Source: Orbicella franksi
Lineage: Eukaryota
Assembly: GCA_964199315.1 (NCBI GenBank)
Contig: OZ116698.1
Location: forward strand, 43,772,001 to 43,836,000
Length of the DNA: 64,000 bases
Reading direction: 5' to 3'
Made by a program: the position numbers and the translations under genes. This document shows, one piece after another, positions 1 to 20,515 of the stretch; the stretch's first letter is position 1; every line of letters starts with the position of its first letter. The notes beneath the pieces are model-generated. The model searched no databases and was not told where the DNA came from. It saw nothing but the letters and a program-made list of their open reading frames with translations.

Positions 1-2790
1 GTGGAAATAGATGAAACTTACTGCAATATTGAGGTACGTGCACTTAATAACAACATCTTATTTTCTTTCATTGCGTTACTATTTCGTGTCACTTTGTTTA
101 TTTCTTTTCTTTTCTCATGGTCGCTTCGAATCAAAATGATTGGTAAAGTTACAAAATCTCTATAAGTAGAGAATATGAGCTTTAGGAAACCAGATATCAG
201 AAACAACTCAGAGGAATCTTAATTAATTGAAGTAAAAGTGTTTTAACGGACCCAAATGCAAAACAGTCAAACTTTCCTCGTTCCAATCTATTCAAACTTC
301 ACAAAAAGTTTCTCGCTTCAGTGCGCACTTTATATTTTTAGTGTCACAAAGGTTTTTTTTTTCCTGATCATAAATCGTATATAAATCTATCTTTTTATCT
401 TTTAAAGGCCCCTTTTTTTACTTCATATTCATCATTTTAAAAGGCATTTTCACCAACATAAAATTTTAACTTTTTTCGAGTGAAAAAAAAATCACTGAAG
501 ACATATTTCATGGGTAAAAATAGAGAGACATTCGGAAATTCGAGTTCCTATAGGACAATGAAACACGTCAGAAAGTCAACAAACGTGACGCAAATACATT
601 ATTTTTCCTGCTTGCTGGAAAAATACACTACAGTTCGAAAAATTAGACAAATTAGGTAAACCCTGAAATGATGAGAGCTCGTAGTTTCAAGCACGTAGTT
701 TCACATCCTTGCGTCTCGTTTATATCTGTTTATCAGTGTACATATGTCTCATGTATAAGGGTTGGGAAGCGTTTGGAGCTTAGTTTTGCCTAATTAAATC
801 AAACAATTCCAGAACGAGCCGCTAGAGGGGACTTTAAATCTGAAAACGTCTTTATTTATTTGTTATTTTTGTAAACTATCCGAGAATGCACTCGATGTCT
901 CATCGTCAAATACCAGATTACCGCATTGAAGGCGTTTTTGTAAACGCCCTAAAAGGTGGTGAACGATGAAACTGGCTAACTTCAATTCACAAAGTCCATG
1001 CAGCTAAAATACGCATGATGAGGCCATGAGTCGTGTAATTAAAACGGTAAAACCCTCATCACTGTAACATGTTTCATTTACGCTCAGTTTACAAAAATAA
1101 AAATGCCAGTTTATTGCTCTTAAAGAGCTTTGAGATAGAAGGGTATCATTTTTGACATTTCAGGGCATAGCTCTTTAGCTAGGCGTAACTCGCAAATTCC
1201 TGTGTATCAAAGAAACATTCTATGATTTGGTATTCGGTTTCATTGTAAGTAAGTTTGTAATTAATTATCTACATTTTTACACTTTTTGTGGTTTTTGTTT
1301 CATCATTCTGCACTGTTTGACATGGTCATGGTTACTGCACGTTCCCAAGTGACTAAAACAAAAACAAAAAAAGGAAAACAAAGAGATTTTCGATTGTTTT
1401 GACGAGGTAAGGTTACTCAAAAAGTTCAAGTGAAAGCCATTTGCTGATAGACAGAATTCCAACACGTTTTTTAATGCACAGAAGAGCAAAGAAGTCAAAA
1501 TAGCAGTATTCCAGCCACAATGATTACTAATGATCTCTATTTAAAGACAAAAGGGCTAGGTGTAATTACATGTGATGGGGCTCTTTTTCGTATTACGTCA
1601 CTGTAGAGTTCCAAGGTTTGCATCGTGGCTTCTAGACAACTGAAAATATTGAGAGTCTGAAATGGGTTTTGCCGTTTAATGTACTTGTCCTTTGTAACTG
1701 ACACTTCAAAACTCAAAGACTTCCACGTGTCACTCGTTTTTAAAGCAACACTTTTACCAACTTAAACCATAGAGTGAATCAATATTTCTTTTTGCAGACC
1801 GTTTGGAGTCCACAACTCTCTTGACGTCAGAATTCTATAGTAACCTAATACGAAAAAGAACCCCATTATATGTAAACCAAGCCTTTTTCTCTTTTAATAG
1901 AGACAATAAATACTCATTGTGGATTGTCTGATACTGTTGCCAATTAATTCGTGTGTCTTCAGAAGCATCTCTTCCTCGCGTGTGCCAAGCTCCGCCGGCT
2001 AAGAGGGACTGGCGGTTCTTGGGACGTGAATTATCCCGAAAGAGAATTATTTGACAATTCAGCCCAAAAACTTGCACACTAATAGCGTCCCTCTCCTGAG
2101 AGTCTTCAGTATAATCGATGTAATAATATCTCTGATTGGTAGATACTTGAACGCAAGAATTCGTTACCAGGCATCAGCCAATCAGACATAAGCAAACGCG
2201 ACGGAAATGGCTTCTGCTTGATACACACTGTAAATTCTCAGAACAGATTGCCATAGAAACATAACACAGCTGTTTGGAGAATTGATTCCTTGAGCTAACT
2301 TCTTACTGGAGTCTTCCTTTCGTGCCATGCGTGTACAATCTGCTGCTAGTTTAGTAAACACTCCTTCTTTATACATATATATAAGAACATTGTTTTTCCA
2401 GACCAGGGTGAATTTTCATGTTTTTCTGCCGATTCTAGGCTGAAAATACTCTCACTTTAGTTATAGCCTATGAGATTTCCGTTTTAGAATCTATCTTGGT
2501 ATCATTTACAAGTGTTTGGTGTCTAGATGGTGTTAAATTTTGCAGCCAGACTGCAGGCAAAAAAGCCTGTTATGACACATCGCAAGAGACCACCAGGGCT
2601 GTTTTTGGGCTAGTTTTGCCGTTTAGAGAAAGGAGGAATTTTATATTGCTTGTTAAAAACATATAATTGTGTTGTATCTCAGCCTCATTCTTAAAATTTC
2701 GCAAATTTCAGCGTCGATATTCTTATGGCACAAGAGTGTAACAGGGCTATAAAGTAACTAATAATATTTTCAACACGACTTGTTTTGCAG

Positions 2791-4160
2791 GAGGCAATTC
2801 CAGTTTCACCCTCAGAACTTGGTGAACTGTCGATATCATTGTGTCACAACCCAACGGATCAAAAACTTACAGTCAAACTAAACTGCGCTAGAGCTTTACA
2901 ACCAATTACGAAGGATGGGAGACTAAGTAAGTATTTCTTATGCAACGTATACTTTGAATGAGATCGGCTCTTACTTGGTGTAAAAGACACAGCGGACGTA
3001 AACCAATAGAGAGCAAAAGTACAAAAGAACAAGGAAACAATGAAAACAATAGGTTGGTGAGGCGGTGCTTTTTTGTGACGTGTTCTGTGTCTTCTACACC
3101 AAGAAGGAGTCCACAGATCTGAGAAAGGAAATGCATAAGAGTAAGACAATTAGGCCGGAGTAGTTATGTTTTGACTTTTCTGGGAAAACAATAACGTCAT
3201 TTTCTTTCTAACTAAAATAAGACATTTTGAACAGAACATGATCTACGAGAAGCGAATAAACCCATTTCAGGGTTATTTTTGTTCTTCCACGGTCTCGAGA
3301 CTAAAATATCTTTTGAATAGTCCCAATTTGTCTTGTACGTGTTGTCCCTCAGTATTTTGTTCTGTTGTCAGGACAAGTCCACTACTCCCGAGTAGAGAGA
3401 CGTTAGAGTAAAATGTCAACAATTTGCCCCAGCCAGCGTTCGGAGAAAGACATCTCATTGCTGAGTCAACTGAAGCATTAAAATCAGTAGCCTACTTCTC
3501 ACAAATTATAGATTAAAGAAAGTTCGTAATTCCATATTATGTTGCGAAATACCACCAAAGATACAAATGAATTGGATAACATGCATGATTCTACCAAGCA
3601 AAATAGAACAAGTATTTGGAGGAAAGGAGAGGATTACAAGGCTGGAAATGAAGTATAATTCAGGGGATCAAGTTTGATTTTGCGAAAGGATGTCGAGAAA
3701 TGAAAACAGCCATTATGGTGAAAGTTTTACTCTTGTGGTCACTATTTTCTTTTGGAGGGTGGGAGGGTGGGTGGGGGCCAAGGGCTTATAAGCGGGAGGG
3801 CTTATAAGCGGCAGTTCATTAATCGATTTACCCGCTTTTTCAGATCCTTTTGTTAAACTCGAGGTTACCTTCTGTGGAAGAAAGCTGAGCAGTCGAACAA
3901 CAAAGACCGCGCATAACACTTTGACACCAAACTTCAGCGAAGTGTTTGTGTTCGACATGCACTCGGACAAACTGCCGCAGGTCACGCTCATGTTCAAAGT
4001 TAAGCATCGAGGAAGAATGCGTGACGTATCGATAGGCACGGTGCATCTTGGGTATTGCGTGAATGTCGAGAGCGAGTACAAGCACTGGGAACAAGTAATG
4101 GAAAAGCCACACCTTGAAATAGAACAGTGGCATCCAATTCAGGATTATTTTGTCGAATGA
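2791..4160 (+). CDS. Synaptotagmin-like protein, last two exons (C2B domain), 5' exons not identified
   Basis: Exons are 2791-2926 (ttttgcag|GAG...CTA A|gtaagt) and 3844-4160 (ttttcag|AT CCT...GAA TGA). They join in phase 1 to give EAIPVSPSELGELSISLCHNPTDQKLTVKLNCARALQPITKDGRLNPFVKLEVTFCGRKLSSRTTKTAHNTLTPNFSEVFVFD...VSIGTVHLG...HWEQVMEKPHLEIEQWHPI. This matches the synaptotagmin C2B pattern (GEL.ISL.Y, L.V...AR.L, DPYVK, P.FNE.F.F, HW..M...P......WH.L). Confidence 0.85.
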
Positions 4161-5171
4161 ATTGTTTTCTTTACGTTTCGTGCTTTAAAGTTGTAAATAG
4201 TGATGTTAGCGCAAAACCCGGCAAATTTGCAATCTGATTGGCTTCGCAGGCACCTAGCACTGACAGACAGTCGGTATTCGGAGCCGGAGCGCGGGGTTTT
4301 TTTATGTATCATTGCCAAAAAGAATGGTGTTCTATGTTAAATATATCAGCGAACTTGCTTCTTTCAAAACAATTAGAACAAGTAGTCACAGGTTGCACAA
4401 TGAGAGATTTGTAGAGGCCAGTGAGCTGCATTGTGTATCATACTTTCCCGGGCCGGGGTTTAAAAGGTAAAGTTTTGTGTGGAAATACCATTTACCCTAG
4501 TTAGTTATTTAAAGGTAAGAATTTGGCGGCTTATGCCTTCGCTGAGCAGTTTATACAAAACAATGGTTAGCGTTATTTATGAGCTACTGAAGATAAAATA
4601 TGAAGAAAGATGTAGTGTTTTCTCGTTTTGTCAAGAACAAATAGTCGACTTCGGCAATACATATTTAATAGTTAGTAATTTCAGAGAAGATTTACAGTGC
4701 TATTTAGAAATTAAAGAGCTGTATATAAGCCCTGGTTGTTTTGTATCAAACGAAGAAATGACGGTTTTCTGTCACGTTACTTATACAGTTAAAAATCCAT
4801 CGGTCTTTTTTATTATCTGTTTTAAGCGGTCTATTGAGATGAGTGGCTTCTTATCTCCTTCTGACCAACTTAAGACGCTTCACGAATGTTTACTTGCATC
4901 AGCTCACATCTGCATATTTAAAAAAAGACCTGCAAAAAGGTACTCGGGGAAAAAAAAACAACTTACAACCTTGTCAACGTTTTAGTGATCCAGGGCAATG
5001 TTAATAATCATTACTGCATTACACCTATTGTCTGATTATAAGACCACCTTTAACTACCTATTTAAAAAATGCGTAGCTTCTCTGTAGCTCTTCGAAGGCA
5101 CTATTAGAAATTCTTCATTTATACCAGCGTTTTGGCTTGGCTTTCTTCCGCGCTTTGTTATGATAAAGAAA

Positions 5172-8100
5172 TCATTCGTCATGCCAGTCAAAGACTGAGG
5201 TGATCGTTTCCTTCCCTCCCATGACTTCGCTGTCTGGCCCCTGATAGAACATTTCCTCTCCAAAGACCCTTGTACCAATGGGACGCAGGACCCGTTTTAG
5301 GTAACTATGTGCGTATTTTCCCCTGGCTCCTAGTATCTGAGGGGCCCAGTTATAAAAGCTCTTTAGAGGGGCCATAAGAGAGTCAGCCAAATCATGGTCC
5401 GCAATGTCAGCATAACACGACACCAAGACTCCATCCACTATCATGGTCCCTTCCTGGGTAACTGGCGCAAAGGCCCCCTGCCTTTCAACTGTCGAGACCG
5501 CTACCACCATCTCAGGAATGGGCCTCCGGCACTGTGGAGCCTGGACGACAATGCGGTCCCCGGGTTTGATTTGGGACGCATGCACTGAGCGGGAGGTATG
5601 TTCTCCACGGGGACCTCGCAAAAATTCAATTTTGAAAATGAGATGAGCTTCGCTGATGGTGAGTTGGGTTTTGCTTTCAGTCGTGATGGTAATAAATTGG
5701 CCTGGAGATTATTAGAGGAAGAAAAGAATTAGACAAAGTAAAATCATAAGAAGGGAAATAAGTGTACTCAGGTTAAAGCGAGAGAGGCGCGGAGGATTTC
5801 TTTTGAACATCAAAATAGCGATCGCGGAATTTAGGGCTGACATCTTTTCCACTGTCAGCATAGGAAGACTAGCTCCTCCCTAGTTCCCTTCTCCTTCCTC
5901 CTACAAAAGATACCGGCTATCTTGTGGGTTAAAATTAACGAATTATATACAGCACTGGTGTCTGACATCGAGAGAGAACAATGTTGATACTTAACAAGGC
6001 CTCTCAGCTGGCGCCTTCTTGGGCCTGGAAAAATCAAGCTAGCTTTTTGGAGGGGGGGGGGGTGGGTGGGGGGCGTTTACATTTCTCAGACAGGTATTTT
6101 GGGGTGCAATTACGGACTAAATGAACGAAGTCTATTCAAGTCAGTAACATCTTACCTTTGTAGTCAGGTTCTTGCTCCAGGAACGTAATGACAGGACTGA
6201 ACACAATCTGACCTTTCTTAGTGACTGTCTTTACCGTGTCACCGATGGCCAGGTCGCTGATGGGAATCTTCTTTCCAGATCTGAGTTCAACTTGTGACTT
6301 GGACGGGAAGCAGGTCGATCCACCAGACTGCTGTACATTTACATTGGTTACACATCCAGCTGAAGTGTTAGAAAAAACACAGATGTTTGTATAAGTAGTT
6401 ATAACTTTGATCATCAGGGGTCTTGAAAGAAATTTTATTGTTAAAGGTCCAAGTTTTTGGTGTACCTTCGGAAAATCAGTTGGTAGGTGGTGTTACGAGA
6501 AATTTCCAATCTCTATACTCTGTGTTGTGTATAATATTTCCCTCTTATTCTCTCTTTTAACTAAACTAGATAATACGGTTATAATACTGAAGGGCCACTT
6601 GGCTTGTATGAAGACTTTACCTCTTTTTTATGATACTGTTAAAGTAATAGTAGCTCGCCCAGAATAGCGTGGCTAGCTGCGAGCTACTAAGGCTTGTAAA
6701 GGAAGTTTTGTAATAATAAAGTACTGTTACTGTTAAATGGTGGTGCGAGGTGGTGTTACCAAGAATTCGGTATTCTTTTTGCTAAAATTTGCATGCGTTC
6801 TACAAATTCAGCCAGTGAACGAACTGTGCTGGAATTTTACTTTTTCATTCAATCTTGACGGACCCTTTAATAAGACTGATCTTTATATGAACCTTCAAGG
6901 ATCATATAAGAGAAACGTAGGACGTCATAATAACGAAATAAAATGACTGATAGCACCAAATCTGCGCAGGAAGATTAGAGATGTTTAGAGAGCTCTCTGC
7001 TCTGTTTTGCGTCACCCTGTTACTCGCTCTCGATTCTCCTTTCTTTCCAATTTTTTCTCTCCAATAATTCTTACAATAACTCATTATTCATTCAGCAATT
7101 CATACCTGTAGGAGCGGCCCACAAATGAGCGGACTGGAAATACTTAGGACCTTTCCCCTGATGAACCCCGTTCCCATTCCACAGCAGAACACCGCAATCT
7201 TCACTTGCCTCGCTACCACTGACTTTGAAGGACATTATTCCAACTTTGCCACTGAAATCTTTCGTCTTGTTAGACTGGTCGGGTTCTCCATACATTTTCT
7301 TCAGATAGTTTAAAAGTTCATCTCGTTCATGAAAGTAAAAGTAGTTTTTCAAGCCTTGCTGGCTCCCAGGCTCCTCGGTTGTGACATTTAACACGGCACT
7401 CATGCGCAGTATGCATGTGGCATTGTCCGGTAACTTACGCTTGTTAAGGTCTTTAAAAAGGTACTGCTTCACGTCCTGGTCGCTATAAAGTCCGCCATAA
7501 TCGATGTTACCAAGATACATCTCTTTAAGAACTGAGAACTGTGGCAACATTTCTGTGGAAAGGGTTTGCACAAAGGTTAAAAGAGTGCTAGTTGTTGTCA
7601 AACGGGTGAACTGGTTAGGAACCACTTTTTTGGGGGACATATCGCCCAGTAAGAACTGTTCACAGACTTATTAATGAGTTAAACCACGGAATCATGGAAA
7701 TAAACAAATCAGCAAAACTTGCTTAATTCAGAAAATTCTGGAAACCCAATGCTGTGACGCAATTCATCGTCAATAAGAAAACACTTGGTTATTCGGACAT
7801 TTTCCGTTTCCATAGATAGTCTGAAAATATATGATGACCGCCTTCGGAAAATGTAGCTCCCACTTCCAACTTTTAACTTCTCCTCCCGTTCTCAAGTCCC
7901 TAATCCCTATGACTTGGAATCCGGCCCAACTTTGTGCCAACAAAAATGAAAAACTGATAAAAAAAAAGCAATATCTGGAAACACAGGTTCGAATTTTGAT
8001 GCTGATGCTAAATATCTCTCAAACCGGGTTCGATTTTGTTCAAGATGGATTTGCACTGTCGCATGATTTTATGCCTGTAAAAAAAGGAGAGCGTAAAGAA

Positions 8101-9007
8101 ACCTTCAATCAGGGAAAAACGCATAAAATAACACGACAGAGAAAATCCATTCCATGCTCGACTGGCGCTTCAAATCGATCGGGTGCCGCTGGCGTAGCCT
8201 GTATGGAGACGTCCAGTCTTTTTACGATTTTAAGAAGGAAATCCGTACATCTGCTTACATCTAGAGGCAGACGCCGACGCCATTGTGGAGCGTCTCAATT
8301 TGTTAAAGCTGTTGTTGCCTGTGGCCATAAAATAGCAAACCACACTGAGAAGAGATCTTTTGGTGGCGTGATATAACAGGCGAGAAAACGGAATGCTTTG
8401 GCAAGATAGAAGCATGTTTAACATTCATTGTAATTTTCTTCGGGCAGGAATGGCAGCATAGATGCACGTTGGAAAAACAATGGACTCGCCGCTGCAACTT
8501 CTCCTGAAATTTTTGAAGCTTGTAAGTCCAACGTGAAATTGAAAAGAAAAATGTTACAAAAAGTTCCATTTCAGTCAAAAAATTACTGAATTAAAACAAA
8601 AACCATCACAAATTTAGTTCAGATCGTCTTTTTTTTCAAAAAAGTTCAGGTATTGCAGCTCAGGATGAAAAACACGTTCTTGACATACAATTTAGCAGCC
8701 GGACCAATCGTCTCAAGGATTTTTATTCGCTATCTCACGGCATCCTTGGTCTTTTCTGTGCATGAACTGTCTCGAAATCTCATAAACACATTGCCAGATT
8801 ACAAGGAAGGCCTTGCAGTGTCGCGTGATATTTTTATTGAACCCCGGTGCGGATCAACAAGACACTAAGCTCTATGCGGCTTCCAACGCGTAAATGAAAC
8901 TAGGCATATCAAACCGTAAAATACAACACAGATATAATGAAGTAATACTTACTTGAAAAAGCCACAGGAATAACTAATACCAGCAGTATCATTATCACCT
9001 GCTTCAT
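5172..9007 (-). CDS. Secreted Tae4-like (NlpC/P60 amidase-like) domain fused to a Hedgehog-type Hint/Hog autoprocessing domain, 411 aa
   Basis: Exons are 9007-8953 (MKQVIMILLVLVIPVAFS, signal peptide), 7552-7106, 6359-6156 and 5701-5172. All three introns are GT-AG and phase 1, and the lengths 55+447+204+530=1236 nt form one open frame. Exon 2 contains LPQFSVLKEMY, NATCILRMSAVLN, YLKKMYGEPD, DFSGKVGIMSF and CGVLLWNG (Tae4-like). Exons 3-4 contain CFPSKSQVEL, ISDLAIGDTV, FSPVITFL, LTISEAHLIF, GAFAPVTQEGTMIVDGVLVSCYA and DHDLADSLMAPL (Hint plus sterol-recognition-like region). Confidence 0.9.
6648..6689. repeat. Mini inverted-repeat element (11-bp perfect arms), possible internally deleted MITE
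   Basis: tagtagctcgc (6648-6658) and gcgagctacta (6679-6689) are exact reverse complements with a 20-nt spacer. The element lies in intron 2 of the Tae4-Hint gene. Confidence 0.45.
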
Positions 9008-11031
9008 GGTGGGCTTTGAACTGCAAAGTCTTTTCTTCTAGGTCAGGGAAGAAACACGTTTGAGCAGGGAAGTTACCTTAGTGGTGCTTAATTGAGCATC
9101 GAAGGCTTGCAGTACTGTCCAAGGGTGAACGCGCATCAATTATTTAAGATTGTCAATTTGTTTCGTATGGTTCCCCTTCGCGACACAGGTGGCCCTATTC
9201 AGCATTGACACTCCGACTCGAAAGTTTTGCATTTAGATGGAAGTGGTTTTGGCAGGGATACAAAACGTTTCACCAAGTCATCGCCACTAAAAATGCAGTC
9301 AAAAATCGTTGAAATAAAATTAAGCTTTTCTCGATATTTTAAGGCGGACCAAACCACTGACCCAATCAGTTGCCACAAGGATGCTTGTTAATTCAAACCC
9401 AATTTTCCTCGATCTCCATGTCGGAACAAGACTGCTACACGCACTTTACATTAGCAAGCAGAGTAACCCAGAGAGGATAACCCGAGGGCTGTGAAAAAGA
9501 CACGGTCATGGAGGATTGCTTTGTATTATTTAAATTGAAACATGTACACTAAACTAAGCCAGTATTCCCTATCAGCGTCTTGGACGAGAGCCAGGGGTTT
9601 ATCGAAAAACTCGTTGAAATTTTGGAACACTTCACTGCGGTTCCTAAAAAATTAACCGCTAGGAACGACCCAAAGAGGCCTGTTTTGGCAATCCTTCACT
9701 TGCGATTTTTTGCATAACTAAATATACCGTTTATTTCGAGAAGATGGAACATGCCCCAATTTGCCATGCAGGTGTTTTATGAGCGACCTCGGAAATCATG
9801 TTGTGGTTATTTAACTAATATAAAAGCAATACTGTGCTTTGGACCGAAGAATATCGAGCGTTTTGTCACTTGCGACCCTCGCAAGCCATATACAAAATAC
9901 TGTAGAAGTGATTCGGTCATTTTGACTGTAAAATGGTCAACACTTGCAGAACACCAGGCGTTGGCGTCTAAGACACACCTTATCTTACTAAGCAACAGTG
10001 TTTCAAAAATACGTTTCCCGGCTGTATTACCAAAGCGACCAACCACTTAGAAACAAAAACAATTCGCTTGGTTTTAATATATTTTTATTAAGTGGTCTCT
10101 TCTTGAGGCAATTACAGAAAGGACCAAACGGTCTACAGCTTTAACTGCTCACAAAGTAAACATAAGATCTTTTTGGAAAAGAAAAATATTTCTTTATAGC
10201 GTCGTTGTTAGCAGGTGAAAGCAACCGGTTATTTTCACTTGTTTGAAGTGAATCAGTACGCAAAAAGAACTGGGTCCTTTCGCAAGCCACGTCGTTAGTA
10301 AGTCTATGAAACCTTACTCAAACCAATCGTACCTGAAATAATATTGTCATAATGTTTCATACAAAAAATGATAGCATGAAAAATTCTCCAAACCGACTCA
10401 TTCTTTTAAATGTTATAGGTGTAGTTCGGAGAATTCAGTGGCACATCATGATGTCTCCAAATACTTGACAATATTTTTTACTCTAGTTACTGATCTACTG
10501 TATTGTGTTGTAACTGCAAGGAGAAATAAGACGTTGATCACTGTGGTTCACCACACAACGCGCAGTAAGGTGAAGCGTGCCGTGAAAATGCTACGAACGA
10601 AACTTAAGGTTTATTAAATGGCGAGACCTCTACGTGCAAAAGCTACATGAATATGAAAAGCAATACAGTTGACAAAATGGTTACAATATAGAATAAAAAG
10701 ATCATGTTCGTACAATACAAAATCTGCACCTAAAAAATAAATTGTGACTTCACAAATATAACTTATTCAAGAATCAAGCCTTAGCTTGCTACATTACAAT
10801 ATTTACAAAGTCGCTGGACTCGGTAAATCTCTGTCACAGACAGGGCCTCGAGTTTATGGTTCATTCATGATTGCTCATCCATTTTTCACGGATTTTCTCC
10901 AGACTACAGTTTCATTTCCATGTACAATGGAGCATTACTTCCACAAAGTTATGGACATGATCAGCGATCAGCCGAGTTGATCGATCTCAGTCTGACAGCG
11001 ACACCAGTGCTTGAACTGTCTTGGGATTGTT

Positions 11032-14000
11032 TTATACCTCAATGATCGCAGCCAGAAAATGAGTGTCAGCGCTAACCCATTTTCCAGGGCTGTCTTCTTC
11101 ATGAACAAACATGAGTGATTCTTCCTTTAAAGTCCAGGGTGAGCATACACCGGTTTTGCCATGACAAAAACTGTAGTACTTAGAGCTCTGTCGGATTCTT
11201 GTCACAACCATATAATGGTGTTCACCGAGATAACTTGTCTCTTTACTGACAATGACTGGGCAGCCCCTCTGAAGAAGGTTAATTATCAAGTCTGTCCAAG
11301 GGCCATTCTTCCCTTTATGATCTCCTCGGTGAATAACCTTGAGCTCTCGCCCCAGGAATGTCTTGATTCGCGTCATTTGAGCAGGAGAGGTTACTCCTCT
11401 ACCGTGAGGCGAACAATGTGATCCAAGCTTGTGAAAGATTCGGCGTGTCACGTTCTCCACCGATGTGTCCATTGTTAAAGGCAGATGTGTGGGCAAACCT
11501 ACAATATGACTTATTGATCTAAGAAAGAGAAGATTTACATTCAAATTCAATTAAATTGTAGTACTTTTCCAACACAAGATTCTCAGTTAAATAAAATAAT
11601 GAAAATTTTTACTGAGTAGCTCACAGAATAAGTCACAGCACGTAAGAAAATCCATAACAAGACAGAACATAACGCAGTTTCGCCAAAATTGACACATCAA
11701 AACTTGATTTAAAGCAAAGATGGCGGTGTAATTGACCAATGACTCGTTTGTAACCTGTTTTCTACCAATCACGCCAAAGGGTCATTCAGCTGCAATATCA
11801 ACTGTGAATTGTACTTCTCCCGAGCTAGCCATTGGCCTATTGCTTTACAAGGAGTTCTAATGTTCTTGATGACTTACCTCTGAGACAACACCGAGATAAC
11901 TTTAGTTTTAGTTTAACGACCACCACTCGAAATCCACCCTAAATTACGACAAATACTTACGGGTATCTTGATTTGGAAGTCCTCGCCGCCATGTTGTCAT
12001 AGTAACCGAGTATTTTTGTCCAGGCCACTGGACCCGAGCCCGACATGCATTGGCCGTTTTGGGGCTGGCGGTACCTTGGAAACAACTCTTCGTGAGGAAT
12101 CCTGAAATATTCGTCAGACAAAGCGCGCCGATTTCTGCTACTTCTGAGGATAATGCCGTAGTTAATGATCATATCTCGAGCCCCGCGGGTTCGCAGCTCT
12201 ACTTTGAAGCGTATTTCTCTTCCTTCAAGATGTTTTCGCACGAAACTCTCATCTGCATCGACTTTCACTTTGATGAAGCGATCACCCATCTTTGTCAGTT
12301 TGAAGAAACGTTTGCTAACCATTGTCATGTCCAGGTAACCTTCTCCTTCACAAACGCCACACAACACCCGGCAAAGTCGTTTCTGCCAATGTTTCTTCCA
12401 GTTCTTTGTCTTCTTCATGTCACCGTCCCGAAGCCCAACAAACTTGATACGGACTTCACGGAACCCTTGTCCGAGTGGAATCCGGACCGAGTCGCCCGGA
12501 CGGAGTCCCAATTCCGCCTTGAACCCATCTTCAGTCTCTTCCACTTGGAAATTAAATTCCGTTTCCAGGCTGGTTGGTTTTGCCGTTGGCTCAGTTGCTA
12601 ACGGCTTAGCTGGTGTTGTGAGTTGCGGTCTTACACCTTAAACAAATTGTGACAAGTATTTAGATTACAATAGGGTCCGAAGCATGCACGAGCGAAACAA
12701 AAAGAAAAACACCCTCGCATACGACTCAAAACGCACTATTAGAAGATGACGATGAATTCACCAATACAATGTCTGTTACTGCAATAAACGTTTTAACAAT
12801 CAAGTAAACACTCAAGTTGCGTTCATCACAGTCAGAAAGAAGCCTTTTGATAACGAAACCCAAGTCTTAGCTCTCATGTTATATAGCCTGCAAGCACGTT
12901 TAATATTGTTCCCGGAGTCCTAAAACCCATTAGGGACCCTTATACACGTCATTTACCTGTCTTCATCGACAGCCACTGGAACCTATTCCACTCTGGCATC
13001 TTTTGAACTCGTTCAGCCAACTCGTCCCATTCTTTTTTCAAGCCCGGTAAAGCACGGGTAACTTGTTCGTCCAAATTCCTCCAGTTAATATTCTGTGTGA
13101 TAGATCATCACACTAGTTACCAACAATCTTTATTACATGGTAAGATTAATATATAGTCACCCCTAACACCTTTTTATCTTGTCATTGGCAAGCAGACGGG
13201 TGACGTAAACACAGAAAATAATTAACCAAGAGATATGGTCTTGATTATGTATTACCAAATTTTCAGAATTAACAACAAAAGCAGTGAGAATTAATATTTC
13301 ACGCTGAAGACGAGACTTGCCACTGATTAGTTGGCTAGTAGTCATCACAGTCCGACTTTGGGTTGAATAGAATAGAGTGAAATAGAATAGAGTGAAATAG
13401 TATTGTATGCCTTTCAAATAGATTTGAATCTGGACAAATTTGTTGTTATTCCCTTCTTCTCACAAGAAATTCAGGAAGTAGCTAAGGGCGACATGGCATT
13501 AACAGTGACAATACAGGAAGGTCAAACGGAATAACGAAAAGAGCGCTGTCCCGTCTGCTATTAGAACAGGATTGGGGGATAAAATTGGCGTGACAATAAG
13601 AGGCTTCGCTTCTCAAACTACGAAAAGGGACAGCTCATGCCGAGACTTCTACGTGAAATTCAGCACGAAAATTCAACCCTTTTCATAGCGGATTTTATGA
13701 TTAAGTTAGTCCTAATCCGCAGTACAGCGATCCTTTATTCTAAAGAGACGATGTCGTTATAAGCAGCAGCTTATCAGGTTATTTTTGGATCGTGCTTCTT
13801 CAGAGTCCATATGTTTATATGTTGATCTTTTATATTATGCTTGTAGATCTTAGTTGATCGGTTCTGACCTGTGCTGTCTTGTTCACTAATCCACTGGATA
13901 ATCCGCCAAGTATGGCTTAACTGCCATTATTCTAATTAATCCGCCCACGCGTGTCTCACCTCATTGCTTTGATCTCTCAGTAAGTTTAGTTGGCATGGTT

Positions 14001-17000
14001 AGTATAAACCAGTAAAAAAATGACCATTTAAGTCTACCTTGGAAATCTTGCAGGCCCGAATGAGGGTTATATAGTTTTGGTTGAATTTATCAGTTCTCTT
14101 AACAATAACAATTTCATGTCAACTTTCATGAAAGCTATCAAACAACATACATAATCATGTACATGTAAGATGTTGTCCGGATGAACTGACAAATTCTCGT
14201 AACTAGAAACTCACTAAACTTATGGCAGTCAGTAGAAGGTTTCCGATTTAAGCTTTTCAAACACGATTTTTTTTTTTGAAACTGCCATGTTTAATTATTA
14301 AAAACACCCTTAATAGAGATACACACCCAAGAATCAGTATCAACACTCCTTGTCGCTGCAACTATTCTGTTCACATCAGTGTCTTCACATGCCATAAGCC
14401 CATCAGGTCGCAGTCGATACACTTTGTGACAGCCATAACCATTCTGATTGGCTTGTGCAGTAAGCACATCTGAGGGGCTTGGTAAAGCTCCTTCTTCAAC
14501 AAGACGGTGGTCACCAGTTTGCCTCGCTGTATGAAAACATAACTTTTAGTAAAACGAACATACAGTTACATGTCCAGTCGTTTGCTCTCTCCTTACTTCA
14601 CTGGTAATTCATTTTACAATGCAGGAACCCAAGTTACATTGGAAAGATTTCTCAGTGAAAGCATGCAATTACTAATCTACAAAACGCACATGTCCACTGT
14701 TCATGTACATTGTAAGATATTCACTTCTGGGATCATTTTTTTTTAATCTATCTATTTTGAAAGGTACATCTGCCAGGATCAGAAACAGCTTTTGGGTATG
14801 TTTTTTGCACATCAATCATGATTTTCATAGTCTGTGCACAGAAGTTTAATTTTGAGCACGTGAGGGATGCAAGGGCACGAGATTGACACCCCCTTGTATT
14901 CAGGCTTTTTAAAATTCCCTGCAGTTAATGCTTTCATGTGATCTCAACAGACACAGGGTAATACATGTGCATGTGATAAGAAATCCAAACAGATATCACA
15001 CTAGTAAAATTTACTGCACAGTAAATTTTGTGAAGTTGGTCCAAATTCAAGTGTAGCTGTTGCAGGTTAACTTTACCCTTGGTGCAAATTGGTATTTTCC
15101 CTTGTTTTTGTGTAATGGTAACACATAATTATTTACTATATGGCTAACTCCATGAGCTGGCAAGATGACCCATATCCTGCACTGTGATGGCTACCCGAAT
15201 AGGTAAGATGGCGCTTTCTTGCCCACTCAATCACACGTGCGTGTACCTGCTGTGGGCCGCAATAAAATTTTGTTCTTTTCCATATAATAAATCCTTTACT
15301 GACCAAGCTTGTTTAATCAAGATGGCTGGATATTGGGTGCTTATGGACCTCAACTACTTCTTGGTCCATAAACATGCAAAAATCCAGCCATCTTCAGTTG
15401 ACTGAACAAGCTTGGTCAATAACCCAAATTTATATGAAACAAAGGAAGATACAAAATTGTGCCAATGGTGCTAAGGGCTGTCATTAAGGGTCCTAACATG
15501 TAACATCTGTACTTATGCTTGATTTTTCCTTGATGCTATGGGAGAAATTGCTTGTTGTTGATACAATTCACCCACCGAGTAACAAGTTTGCTATGGGTGT
15601 GGAGAACAAGGCTACTTGTGACTCAAAACTTAATGACAGCCCTGGTACCTGCTGAACCACAACATAGCCAACCCTTGCCTTGGGCTGTGTACCACCCATA
15701 TATCTAAATTGGAGGTCAAAAATATCAGATTTTGAACACCTGGCTTCATTAGTGTATCTAAGTGTAATTTTCTGCCAAAATTATCTGAAATGTATCTGAA
15801 ATAAACTTAGGCAAATCAACACTCCTGTCTGAATGCAAAAAAGATTTCCATGTACATCTCCAGTAGGACAATTTCTACACTCAGATTACAAAGATGATTT
15901 GTTTGGGAAAGCCTCTGATGGTGGAGAACACAACATAAGAGACCTCCACCAGAAGAGTCCAGTGAGCCAATAATTATGTCACCATATCCTGTACAGGTGC
16001 ATTCACAGGTTATACATACATAGTAACCAGACCTAAATCAACCATATACACTGTACATGTACTTACCAGCTGAAATGATAACATATTTTTCACCACTTTT
16101 GCCATTCAGTTTAGCTTCCCAATAAGCAACATACTTGTCTGGTAGATCCTTTCTAAAGATAGGCCTCAAACCCATTATGTCATCCTGACTTATAGCGTCT
16201 GATAGGGTGTAAATTTCCTCCTGTGCCTCCCATGATACATTGTTATTGTGCCATGATGTATTAGATAAAGTTGGAGGATGAGTAACCAAGATATAATCAT
16301 CACCATAGTTCCAGCCCTTGTTTCTGTTTTTGTTACTGAAAGGTGGAAAATGTGAGTTGTCGTTATGAAACAAGGAGGCAATTGTTAGGTTAAAACGTGT
16401 GAGTGAGACAAATTTTATGACTTTGTGCACTTAACAATCTACAAAATTAATGTTTAAGATGCACCAGTTACATACCACTCATAATTTTAGGAAAACAGGA
16501 TTTTTCGGGTAAACAATTCTTGCCAGATTATACAAGTATAAAGGACAATAAGTACTATAAATAGGACCTGTGTTATTTTATGCTATTGCCAACATCAAAA
16601 ACTGAGCATGAAGAAGTTTGGGGAAGGGAATCCCTTGATCGAAACAGTCCCACCACAAAAGAACATGCAATGTGGAGTATGGAAATATGGAATGTACCCT
16701 TCATTCAGATGTTACTTTCTGGCTATTTAGTCACTGCTGTAAGTTCATCCATGTTTGTTTTTTGATGAACTTATGACAAATGTTCTGGAGGGTATATTGT
16801 AGCCTCCACACAGGTGTATTAACTAACTAACTGACCATCAGTAAGCTATTCTTGACTACTGACCTTTGTGCAACCTGACTTTTGATTATAGGTAATTTGC
16901 ATCTGGCTTAAACATTACAAAAAAAATTACAAAATTTGTGTATTTATGAAATCATTTTAAAACACTCTATTTGTAACAACTCAAGTAATTCTTCAAAAGT

Positions 17001-20000
17001 TGCTGTTTTATAAATGTCAAATACACCTTTTTGCAATGACAACTTTCATACTTTCAAAACAGTATTTAGGAACACTCAAAATGCATTGTCATCTGACATG
17101 GTGCCCAAAACATTGCTTCTTCTCTAATAGCTGTTCTGTTACTGCGATGATCATTCTTCCCTTTCATCTACAACTGCAGTTCATATATGAATTATTTCAT
17201 ATATACTTCACATCATTTCACTCCTCACGGGAAGATATGAACTCAATTAATTGACCTCGCTCCCAATGTGTGGCTTCATAGCTCAGTTGGTAGAGCATCG
17301 CACCGGTATCGCAGAGGTCACGGGTTCAAATCCCGTTGAAGCCTTGATTTTTTTCAGGCTTCTTCTTTCCAATTGCTTAAATTGGAAAATTTACTACGAT
17401 GATCATTCTTCACTTTCAAATTCACCAGTGCTAAACAACTCATGTAAACAACTTTACCTCCACTACCTCTCCACAGATTTCTAAGTTAAATGCACTATTT
17501 GAAAGCTCCGGAAATTTAGATTCCGCAGTTCATAATGATTTAGAAGCCATGGTATGTTAAACAGCCTTTACCGGTACATATGTTGTTACCCATTATCTTT
17601 TATATTTGTATTTCATCTCATTTCTGAGTTCTATTTAGACATGGCTTTTTGTCAGATCTGTGACTACACTTGACTGGACCGGAAGTGCTTTTAAATTTGT
17701 GAGCATGCACTCCATCGAAGCGCAGCCTGGAGCCATGAAAACATATGTATTCTCTGGCTAAAATATATAATTTATGTTGTAATACCGAGCCAAAAAAACG
17801 AAAATAGAAAAAATACAGAATATCAGTCGGCTCACCAGTAACCAACGTTGAAATTGCCTGGTATTGTTTATGAAAGATTTGCGCCGGCACAAAAATTGCC
17901 CGGGGAAATTGCAGTCAAAGGCCTCCGTCCATCATCTCGTGTTTCCTCGCACATATCCACGCCAGGAACCACGCAGGCTGGTCCACTCAGCTGTAGTCAC
18001 AGACTAGACGAAAGCTATTGATAAGTTTCACCCCTTGTCTCTTTTCTCTTTTAATGCGCAGCTGTTATGAAACCTGAGAATCTTTCCCCTCGATGAGAGT
18101 TAATAGTTAACGACGATAATAGAAACTTGAGATGTAATCGGAGTGTCATAATTACAAAGTGGCAGGAGAGATAATATTCGGAAATATAAACCGCTTTTGC
18201 TTCATTTAAATCCCTTTTGAACGACTCAAAAAGACACCATAACACAGGTAAACAGCACATTTATTTTTACTGCTGATATAGTGTTTGGGTCCCCTGTCCC
18301 TTTTGTTGTTATAACCACTGTTGTTACAAAGGTAGTCAGCAGTGACAGACAAAACAGAAAAATGCTCATTGTAGGCTACATGTGGCAGGGTAGCTGTCCA
18401 GAAATAGAATTTTATCAGCAACAAGTTCAATTTAATCCTATACAGTTAAAACTATTAAACCAGGCTGCAAAAAAATTAAAAGGACTGAACTTTTAGAAAT
18501 GCTTTGGTCATGATCAGGCATAGGTTTGATGCATATTTAAATTTTCTTAAACATGTTGGTCTCTTTAAGTGACCTTTGTGAGTTAGACTGAACATTTGTT
18601 TGGGCAAAAATAAAGTGAATGAGCCAGCCACACAAGGTTCCCCTATAATTTCTTTCAGCACTATTGTTTATCATCTACATAGACCTGCTTTAATTCTTTC
18701 AGATCTCTTTCATTGAATCCTTTGATCTCCCAGCTTTTTCATATCAAAAGACAGGGGATATAGATCTAGATGTGTCTGACCATTCAGAGATCCCACAAGA
18801 TTAACTCAGGTCAAGGGGTTGATCAATTTATAGATAATATTAATCCCTAATAAAACTCAGTCAAACCATTCTTGACAGGTTCTCATGGCTCTTCCTCAAG
18901 ACAGAGTGTTGATTTCATTTTGTGGGAAATCAAAACCCAACTCATCTTACAATACATGAAACTTAATCTTCAAAGGAAAATTGCTTAAGTTTATGTTTTT
19001 ATCCTGTTTGGGCTTAATTGGAAACGTAAATAACATACTTAAAAAGGTATGCTGAGTATTTCCCATAGTTTGACTTATAGTTTTTGATAGAGGGAAAAAA
19101 TCTTTCAGAGTGCACTTTAAAAATGCCAAACTGTAATCTGGCTTAAAAAGATTTCAATCAAAGAAACGGGCTTCATGGAAAATCCAGTTACAAAATCTCA
19201 TTGGATTTTATGGTTATTATTGAACTGAAAAACTTGTGGGATGGGTTTGATTATACTAAAACCTTAATCTGACTAGGTTGTGCATGTAAGGTGCATTGAA
19301 GCCATTTGACCAACTTCTGGAATTCTAACCCAATATCCGTAAAAACCCGCAAAGTGAAATCCACTTATATAATTAAGATTAAAGCTCTTTTAGGAGGCCG
19401 AAAGCTTTATATGCACGTGTAAATCACCGCTTCTAATTCCACTTCTTTGGTGGCATGGGCTTTTAAAGACAAAAATTTACAACAAAAAGATGCGTTTCTT
19501 ATTGAGACTGAAAAGCCGTTCAAGACAACGCACAAAAAAGTTCATTAGGAAGCTTCTTCCGATGTTAATGACAGAGTTGAACACCCAGAACAAATTTTGG
19601 CGCCGAGTGATTAAAGTGGTTTAAGTCAATCCAGGTTGTAAGTGTCGAGGTCAATTAAGAAACCTTCTAACTAAGAATTGTACTCAGCCGGGTTGTTTCG
19701 AAATTTGCACGGCTTTTACTTGTGCACTCACAATGTTCATTACAATAACAACAGGTCTATTGTCACCGTCAACAGTGAAAGGGCTTGAGCAATTTGTAGG
19801 TTAATTTCGTAGTCAATAAGAGTAATTAGGCAAGCATCAAAGCGACCATTCATTGGTTCAGTGTCGATGAAAATTGCAGGGTTCCATCAGATACCGTGAA
19901 GTGGCGAAGACGCAAACAGCGATCTCCGCAGCGCCGACAAATTAAATTTACCTTTTATCTTTACGACGATTTCTTCCGGAAAATAAAGCATGGGGTTTTA

Positions 20001-20515
20001 CCGTGCAATTATGAGCTTGGAATGCCTAAGCGGTGTCTTTGTGTTGGTCGCCTCCAATGACACACAAGAAAGCCAACGAACAAACGAAAGCTGTGGTAAC
20101 TTTAAAACCAGTCCGAATAAGTTCATTACATGGATCGAAATAAAGCAAACATAGATGGTAGAATAGTCCAAGGATACTTCATTAAAACACTCACTGACTT
20201 CAGCGTAAAACTAGGCTCTCATGCCATTTACGTCGTACGACATGTTTACAGAACCGCTTACTAAAGAATGAACACTCACCTATTTGATTTTTCGATTGCG
20301 TAGACGACTAGAAATCCCACTAACAACACCAGAATCAGAAGGCAAATGAAAACACACGTACGAGGAGATCTTCTTCGTCTTTCGCCTTTGCATTCCACCA
20401 CAACTTCTTCTGTATTTTCGACCGTCGTTTCGTCCTCCATGTTGTCTGGACAGAGTTGCGTCGTTTCCCCGTTCGGTGGTTTCTCCACAGTGGATTTTGC
20501 GACTGCCTTTACCAT
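11032..20515 (-). CDS. Type II membrane protein with bacterial-type prodomain and C10/C39-like papain-fold peptidase-like domain (catalytic Cys replaced by Ser), 667 aa
   Basis: Exons are 20515-20280, 16335-16067, 14526-14327, 13092-12957, 12636-11961 and 11518-11032. All introns are GT-AG with matching phases (2,1,0,1,2), and the total of 2004 nt is open. The N-terminus has RRRRSPRT followed by a hydrophobic CVFICLLILVLLVGFLVVYAI segment. Later motifs include RPIFRKDLPDKYVAYWEAK, YVIISA, CMSGSGPVAWTKILGYYD, PVIV...HHYMVVT and GKWVSADTHFLAAI. Confidence 0.85.
15140..15430. mobile_element. Degenerate interspersed repeat (non-autonomous DNA-element-like)
   Basis: Repeated internal motifs gcaagatg/gtaagatgg/caagatggc and gaccaag...cttggtc are present. 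It resembles a common coral interspersed repeat recalled from memory and was not checked against a database. Boundaries are approximate. Confidence 0.4.
17139..17418 (+). mobile_element. tRNA-derived SINE-like unit bounded by ~26-bp direct repeats
   Basis: Direct repeats actgcgatgatcattcttccctttca (17141-17166) and actacgatgatcattcttcactttca (17393-17418) enclose a tRNA-like cloverleaf carrying A and B boxes. It lies in intron 1 of the C10/C39-like gene, in antisense orientation. Confidence 0.7.
17272..17343 (+). pseudogene. tRNA-like sequence (Thr-GGT-like), probably a SINE component rather than a functional tRNA
   Basis: The acceptor stem ggcttca/tgaagcc, D stem gctc/gagc and T stem acggg-ttcaaat-cccgt all pair perfectly. 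The anticodon stem (tcgca/cgcag) pairs poorly around ccggtat. Confidence 0.6.

Follow-up and report, generated by a model that had tools for sequence, protein, structure and literature searches.

Cnidarian Hog proteins and domesticated Tae4 amidases

In 2008, Bürglin reported six Hedgehog (Hh)-related genes in Nematostella (PMC2362128). In supplementary file 5 of that study, Nv 120428 and the Acropora millepora expressed sequence tag (EST) DY579185 were classed as 'Y hog' and credited with a common 'new upstream motif' containing 'at least 3 conserved cysteines'; the signal cleavage of Nv 120428 was given as 'AFA-RN' (PMC2362128). Joint Genome Institute (JGI) gene 120428 is also NvHint3 (ABX89901.1), named by Matus in 2008 (PMC3531958). 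A second described system is nvDae4, one of the Nematostella homologues of the bacterial effector gene tae4 that are called Dae4. Its product kills bacteria as a peptidoglycan amidase that depends on Cys63, and 2'3'-cGAMP and NF-kB induce it (Margolis 2021; PMC8713801). Here we describe a gene on the minus strand of a 64,000-nucleotide stretch of the genome of the coral Orbicella franksi (contig OZ116698.1, positions 43,772,001 to 43,836,000; hereafter the window, in which all positions are numbered). The gene is a genuine and transcribed part of the animal genome, and its product consists of a signal peptide, a domain derived from Tae4 and a complete Hint/Hog domain of the Hedgehog type. Neither the gene family nor either of the two domain families is new; the gene combines a Dae-type domesticated effector with a Hog protein.

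The likeness of the window gene to NvHint3/'Y hog' consists of a signal peptide, the same N-terminal motifs (..TC.LR.S.., ..C.VLLW[ND]G.. and a linker Cys) and a Hog domain beginning CFPS. The printed 'Y hog' sequences carry the motifs of the window protein in the same order, the Acropora relatives that we recovered agree with the A. millepora EST, and Cys65, Cys138 and Cys170, which are conserved in the family, match the cysteines of Bürglin's description. Judged from these sequences, the window gene is the stony-coral orthologue of NvHint3/'Y hog'. The two differ in that the 2008 account, which concerns other species, gives the N-terminus no fold or origin, and in that the Nematostella protein has Phe in place of His149 of the coral protein and Gln at the general-base position of the Hog domain.

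An original prediction for this locus, made from the DNA letters, knew of no earlier description of the fusion. As a gene, the fusion is not new: its family entered the literature in 2008 under the names Hint and 'Y hog', whereas the Tae4 identity of its upstream motif was not found stated. No searchable paper identifies the 'Y hog' upstream motif as Tae4 or links Tae4 with Hint or Hedgehog, and it appears not to have been published before that the 'Y hog' cargo descends from Tae4 and has a broken triad. The Tae4 family was named in 2012, and the homology was not visible in 2008 because Tae4 was not yet known as a family. Matches to both PF14113 (Tae4) and PF01079 (Hint) occur on two orthologues, in one case precomputed and in the other obtained by a scan made here. 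In RefSeq and UniProt, orthologues carry names such as 'desert hedgehog protein-like', 'Indian hedgehog protein' (AlphaFold DB A0A2B4STS4) and 'protein hedgehog-like'; these names are misnomers, the proteins having no Hedge domain.

The coral gene resembles Dae4 in being an animal-resident, tae-derived gene with a eukaryotic secretion signal, and it is expressed in polyA reads. The differences are that nvDae4 is an active enzyme for which no Hint domain is mentioned (PMC8713801), whereas the coral protein lacks the canonical catalytic His and is fused to a Hog domain. That nvDae4 (NCBI Gene 5507694, Cys63) and NvHint3 (Cys64) could be one and the same gene is improbable, since a candidate for the catalytic His is missing from NvHint3 and nvDae4 has been treated as a small secreted enzyme.

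Structure and transcription of the Tae4-Hog gene

Four coding segments on the minus strand, read in the order 9007-8953, 7552-7106, 6359-6156 and 5701-5172, join into an open reading frame (ORF) of 1236 nt that encodes 411 residues and a stop codon. All three introns are of the GT...AG type. Exon 1 ends in phase 1; exon 2 (447 nt) is symmetric (phase 1-1), as is exon 3 (204 nt). GC content is 38% across the window. The coding part of exon 1 (8953..9007) contains the start codon and the signal peptide (residues 1-18), with cleavage predicted after Ala-Phe-Ser; it is supported by the ORF assembly, by RNA depth at 8852-9100 and by the junction 7552/8953, and RNA depth places a 5' untranslated region (UTR) upstream to beyond 9100. 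Exon 2 (7106..7552) encodes the entire Tae4-like domain (residues 19-167), which was assigned through Pfam, phmmer, hhalign, AlphaFold2 with Foldseek, and the ratio of nonsynonymous to synonymous substitution rates (dN/dS). Exon 3 (6156..6359), supported by a Pfam Hint match, by its junctions and by dN/dS, holds the predicted autocleavage site Thr183/Cys184, with the Cys184 codon at 6310-6312. Exon 4 (5172..5701), supported by a second Pfam Hint match and by RNA depth, encodes the rest of the Hint domain (Ser252-x-x-His255, and Cys331 in a 'SCYAD' motif) and a C-terminal tail of about 70 residues that resembles an adduct-recognition region, and ends with the stop codon (5172-5174).

Evidence for splicing comes from public RNA data of the same coral. 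In the raw reads of a polyA RNA-seq run (X23), 71 reads cross the junction 7552/8953, 67 cross 6359/7106 and 59 cross 5701/6156, and the 781 reads at the locus give a depth of about 30-100x over the exons against about 0-2x over the introns. In a second run (X5), a transcript contig of 3562 nt contains exons 2, 3 and 4 contiguously. The junction reads and this contig establish splicing of the Tae4-like exon to the Hint exons. The four phase-compatible exons that had been proposed for the locus, the three junctions joining them (8953/7552, 7106/6359 and 6156/5701) and the residue positions given for the signal peptide, the Tae4-like domain and the start of the Hint domain at Cys184 are all correct.

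Several features of the transcripts lie outside this coding model or vary within it. Contigs that contain exon 4 (record 9 of run X5 and record 1 of run X14) continue for about 2.3-2.5 kb beyond the stop codon, and read depth climbs just below position 5233; over this continuation, at 2600-5171, the transcript either has a long 3' UTR or overlaps a convergent C2-domain (synaptotagmin-like) gene. Within intron 2, a short stretch at 6542-6656 reaches a contig depth of 363 in run X5 and has many loose ends, and a 65-nt 'skip' (6567/6633) with 11 replacement letters occurs in the same place. This stretch looks like a dispersed repeat that is expressed elsewhere and lies outside the Tae4-Hog transcript. 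Coding differences between the assembly and run X23 were found at 5316-7215: His161Gln is fixed in the reads, with Gln matching other corals; Thr240Asn, Pro266Thr and Arg295Gly have frequencies that are intermediate or high; Ala254Val, which falls within the SxxH motif of the Hog domain, is present in about 15% of reads; and five synonymous sites also differ. Elsewhere in the window, the three longest ORFs of 11032-20515 have no Pfam match at E <= 0.01.

Homology of the N-terminal domain to Tae4

A Pfam scan of exon 2 with E values up to 1 returned Tae4 alone and no Hedge domain. The match to PF14113 reaches 23.5 bits (E = 6.4e-5), slightly below the cut-off of 27, but a phmmer search of PDB sequences found the Tae4 of S. 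Typhimurium (4J30/4HFF/4JUR) at E = 5e-6, with the next matches insignificant at E >= 0.04, and in hhalign a profile of 21 coral sequences alone matched one of nine bacterial Tae4 domains with 99.2% probability and E = 1.5e-19. One orthologue scores 27.5 bits against PF14113, and several others carry a precomputed match to it. A HMMER scan of 1.84 billion representative proteins yielded 13 at E <= 0.001, most of them coral fragments or fusions; one is a bacterial sequence of Tae4 type and one a low-identity repeat protein that looks spurious. The profile built from the HMMER matches reaches annotated bacterial Tae4 proteins, including the tips of Rhs toxins. In a feature search of the ESM Atlas, Tae4 was the family of all ten best matches that have a family (10/10, score 0.96).

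The predicted structure leads to the same family. AlphaFold2 models of the domain have a predicted local distance difference test (pLDDT) score of 89.4 with a mixed alignment and 85.5 with a coral-only alignment. Searched against the PDB with Foldseek, both models retrieve eleven Tae4/Ssp chains from Salmonella, Enterobacter, Agrobacterium and Serratia at template modelling (TM) scores of 0.67-0.78 and a probability of 1.0, and nothing besides Tae4/Ssp below E of about 0.9. The best cluster representative in AlphaFold DB is a coral 'Indian hedgehog protein' of 405 residues, of which residues 20-169 superpose on the model at TM 0.91. Sequence profiles and structure models thus confirm the Tae4-like domain of the original prediction: the exon 2 domain is a genuine Tae4 homologue and has the Tae4 fold.

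Compared with the bacterial proteins of known structure (4J30 and 4HFF; 4HFK/4HFL from E. cloacae; Ssp1/Ssp2 of Serratia, 4BI3/4BI4), the coral domain is homologous in sequence and has the same fold (TM 0.7-0.78), and it keeps the region of the nucleophile Cys as well as the motifs 'YL..xG.PD', 'G[KQ].GI', 'LWNG' and a terminal 'LW'. Unlike bacterial tae4, the coral gene has introns and a signal peptide and comes without a type VI secretion system (T6SS) or a Tai4 immunity partner. Its product has exchanged the catalytic His for Gly and the Asp of the triad for Gln, and has gained Cys138, N-glycan sequons and the C-terminal Hog domain.

Searches of the coral's own genome with the protein and with the profile found this single Tae4-like locus and no stand-alone Tae4-like gene. 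In a maximum-likelihood tree, the coral and anemone domains, a second eukaryotic-looking group and bacterial Tae4 form three separate groups; since the tree has these three groups and no outgroup, one transfer and several transfers are not told apart by it.

The second group consists of Tae4-like ORFs on large, microsatellite-rich contigs that are probably metazoan (for example loci L002:4113-6693 and L006:7404-10681). These ORFs lack the canonical His, contain an 'HQ' motif, and have Cys, Gly or Ser at the nucleophile position. At both L002 and L006 an intronless ORF of about 565 residues lies directly upstream, the L002 copy being without a Pfam match, and a stanniocalcin-like ORF was found near second-group Tae4-like ORFs. 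No downstream Hint exon was found within 6-10 kb of the Tae4-like ORF at either locus.

A remodelled active site

Tae4 amidases use a Cys, a His and an Asp, and the coral family has kept the first of these and lost the second. Cys65 (codon 7413..7415, minus strand) aligns to the nucleophile Cys44 of S. Typhimurium Tae4 in the alignment to 4J30 and is invariant in 26 of the 26 relatives that cover the position. The catalytic His126 of the same enzyme aligns to Gly139, on which pairwise, multiple and profile-profile alignments agree; Gly, Ser, Asp, Asn or Arg, and never His, occupies this position in 28 of 28 relatives. Directly before it stands Cys138, a family-specific residue kept in all 28 (codons of Cys138 and Gly139, 7191..7196, located by column alignments to Tae4). 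On the alignments, the canonical catalytic His is lost from the family while the nucleophile Cys is kept.

A candidate for a different His lies further along the chain. His149-Gln150 (codons 7158..7163), located by its spacing of 6-7 residues after a conserved Trp, does not vary among stony corals and is also kept by the sea anemone Actinostola, whereas in the Nematostella orthologue the first of the two positions is Phe. By the same spacing, Gln150 corresponds to Asp137, the third residue of the triad, a position that is Asp or His in the aligned bacterial sequences. The ordered hallmarks of a Tae4 amidase that had been noted at this locus are therefore present as far as the nucleophile Cys and the motif blocks are concerned, but the catalytic His (Gly139) and the third triad Asp (Gln150) are not. 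The mature fragment has three conserved Cys residues (65, 138 and, in the linker, 170) and three N-glycan sequons, one of which, Asn62-Ala-Thr, stands immediately before Cys65.

The Hog domain

The C-terminal half matches PF01079 with 50.3 bits in exon 3 and 98.4 bits in exon 4 (cut-off 29.7), and the match ends at profile position 184 of 213. Aligned to solved Hedgehog C-domains, those of Drosophila Hh and human SHH (1AT0, 6TYY, 6TD6 and 7E2I), the C-terminal half of an orthologue gives E values between 1.9e-17 and 9e-13. These scores, above cut-off on both exons, together with the Hh structure alignments bear out the complete Hint domain that had been proposed to begin at Cys184. Cys184 is the Hint nucleophile and is followed by Phe ('T/CFPS'), and this CF pair is kept in all full-length relatives. 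The TxxH motif takes the form Ser252-Glu-Ala-His255, with Ser for Thr, and aligns to the 'T..AHL' block of Hh; Cys331 lies within the 'SCYAD' motif. In Drosophila Hh, D303 is the general-base Asp for sterol transfer. The corresponding position is Glu229 ('FLEQ') in the window protein, Asp in Acropora, His in another coral and Gln in Nematostella. About 70 residues follow 'SCYAD', and the alignment to Hh enters only some 17 residues of the sterol-recognition region, so that sequence hints weakly at an equivalence of this tail to that region. Three other Hint loci were found in the coral genome.

The coral protein shares with Hedgehog a Hog domain of the Hedgehog type (PF01079). The Hedge domain is reported to resemble M15 DD-peptidases (bioRxiv 10.1101/276295), and the cargo in both proteins would descend from the fold of a bacterial peptidoglycan hydrolase; the coral cargo differs in having the fold of a papain-like Cys amidase and not that of the zinc-containing Hedge domain. 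The same logic of a secreted cargo released by Hog applies to nematode warthog, groundhog and quahog proteins, to choanoflagellate Hoglet, a cellulose-binding-like domain with Hog, and to the AIG1-Hint proteins of corals (PMC2362128; PMC3723955). The cargo domains of these other Hog proteins are unrelated to that of the coral gene, and none has been reported as derived from a T6SS effector.

Conservation and selection

The same layout, with a single Tae4-like exon followed by two Hint exons, is present in four other coral assemblies, in two of which (L007 and L008) the convergent C2-domain gene is also found downstream. Full-length fusions were recovered from Acropora millepora, A. cervicornis, Montipora capricornis and M. 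foliosa. Among sea anemones, Actinostola has a partial fusion and Nematostella also carries the fusion, so that the survey extends the architecture of the window gene from stony corals, with their four-exon layout, to sea anemones. When four coral orthologues are compared by the Nei-Gojobori method, dN/dS ranges over 0.16-0.26 in the Tae4 exon, 0.05-0.12 in exon 3 and 0.18-0.34 in exon 4; these ratios indicate that purifying selection acts on the two halves about equally strongly.

Predicted maturation and function of the released fragment

The product would be a secreted precursor made of the signal peptide, the Tae4-descended domain and the Hog autoprocessing domain. In the endoplasmic reticulum, Cys184 would attack the carbonyl of Thr183 in an N-to-S acyl shift aided by Ser252 and His255, and either water or a sterol would resolve the resulting thioester, Glu229 taking the place of the general-base Asp of Hedgehog in the latter case. 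Residues 19-183 would thereby be freed as an N-glycosylated, probably lipid-tethered fragment of about 165 residues with the Tae4 fold, and the release of such a fragment is the natural prediction for this architecture. If a sterol were used, it would anchor the fragment in the outer leaflet of the cell that makes it. The mature N-terminus (Lys-Met-Leu-Pro), in contrast to that of Hedgehog, has no Cys; therefore no N-palmitoylation of the Hedgehog type is expected, and the fragment would carry at most one lipid.

We propose that the released domain would act as a surface-tethered sensor or ligand for the bacterial cell wall and not as a classical bactericidal amidase. In its core form, to which we give a probability of about 0.55, this proposal says that the released Tae4-fold domain binds the stem peptides of peptidoglycan and hydrolyses them not at all or at most in an atypical manner. 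A classical amidase is unlikely because the catalytic His is missing in every relative and the third triad position is Gln, and a binder is favoured over a cutter because substitutions accumulate at the abandoned His position, in contrast to the preserved fold and cleft Cys. The cnidarian precedent of nvDae4 (PMC8713801) also counts towards a function involving peptidoglycan.

Several points weigh against this proposal. Cleavage, lipid adduct and ligand are predictions, the first two drawn from the established mechanism of Hedgehog. Where Hedgehog has Gly in front of the Hint Cys, members of the family have Thr, Ser or Leu; because this residue and the general-base position both vary, sterol transfer may not be universal among the members. 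The conserved Cys65 and His149-Gln150 are equally what would be expected of an enzyme whose catalytic His has been relocated. NvHint3 is reported to be developmentally expressed and Wnt-responsive (PMC3531958), behaviour that suits a signalling ligand no less than an immune molecule.

The relocation of the catalytic His can be developed into an alternative in which the released domain is an active amidase with a remodelled site, formed by Cys65 and by His149 from a neighbouring loop with Gln150 orienting it, and in which the fragment would be a sterol-anchored bactericidal enzyme. The invariance of Cys65 and, in corals and Actinostola, of His149-Gln150 would be explained, as would the placement of this pair at the third-triad position of Tae4 shortly after the conserved Trp; a dN/dS of about 0.2 supports the alternative, and the relative nvDae4 is a Cys-dependent bactericidal amidase (PMC8713801). 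Yet the canonical His is absent from all members and its replacements vary as they would at an abandoned site, the Nematostella orthologue has Phe for His149, and a conserved N-glycan sequon directly precedes Cys65. With these points on both sides, we consider an active enzyme unlikely but not negligible.

A different alternative is that the Tae4-fold fragment serves as a lipid-modified intercellular signal, such as a non-Hedgehog morphogen or a neural ligand, unconnected to peptidoglycan. Such a role has likewise been proposed for other Hog-family cargo domains, and a broken catalytic triad fits a pseudoenzyme. Matus (2008) reportedly placed NvHint1-3 in putative neural precursors. In a screen of embryos with ectopic Wnt activation, NvHint3 was up-regulated, and it belongs to the two already characterised genes in the screen that are without expression in endomesoderm-related regions (PMC3531958). 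The signalling alternative, however, has no known receptor to point to, and a pure ligand leaves the invariant former nucleophile Cys65 unexplained. Present evidence fits this alternative and the binding of peptidoglycan alike, and we regard a purely signalling role as rather unlikely. Although the locus appears in public collections as several ORFs, having been cut up by gene callers of the prokaryotic kind, and the 2007 JGI model of Nv 120428 spanned the Hog domain only (PMC2362128), an artefact, whether a chimeric gene model or bacterial contamination, is rejected with near certainty by the spliced reads (59-71 per junction), the X5 contig spanning exons 2-4, the GT-AG introns, the GC content of the window, and the fact that four further coral assemblies, as well as Acropora and Montipora proteins in RefSeq, show the same layout.

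Implications for cnidarian Hint genes and coral biology

The Hint genes of cnidarians have been orphans since 2008, their N-terminal halves being without known relatives, and one of them can now be assigned an origin in a bacterial toxin of interbacterial warfare. For the NvHint3 family, the Tae4 assignment supplies a testable biochemical hypothesis, namely binding or cleavage of peptidoglycan combined with a lipid tether. For domesticated amidase effectors it adds a new fate, in which a pseudoenzyme-like domain is fused to an autoprocessing module and kept in stony corals and sea anemones. The hedgehog names given to orthologues could skew counts of coral Hedgehog ligands and mislead analyses of Hedgehog signalling.

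The origin of the coral cargo also parallels the proposed descent of the Hedgehog ligand domain from a bacterial cell-wall peptidase. Tentatively, and with well under even confidence, the gene may be read as a second, independent case in which a degraded peptidoglycan-hydrolase fold has become the lipid-tethered cargo of a Hog domain, here as a sterol-anchored sensor or effector for the cell wall at the interface between host and microbes. If this is true, the gene would provide a tractable experimental model of how Hedgehog-type ligands arise from cell-wall enzymes. Corals depend on managing the bacteria on their surface, and a tethered protein that recognises bacterial cell walls would therefore be of interest to holobiont biology.

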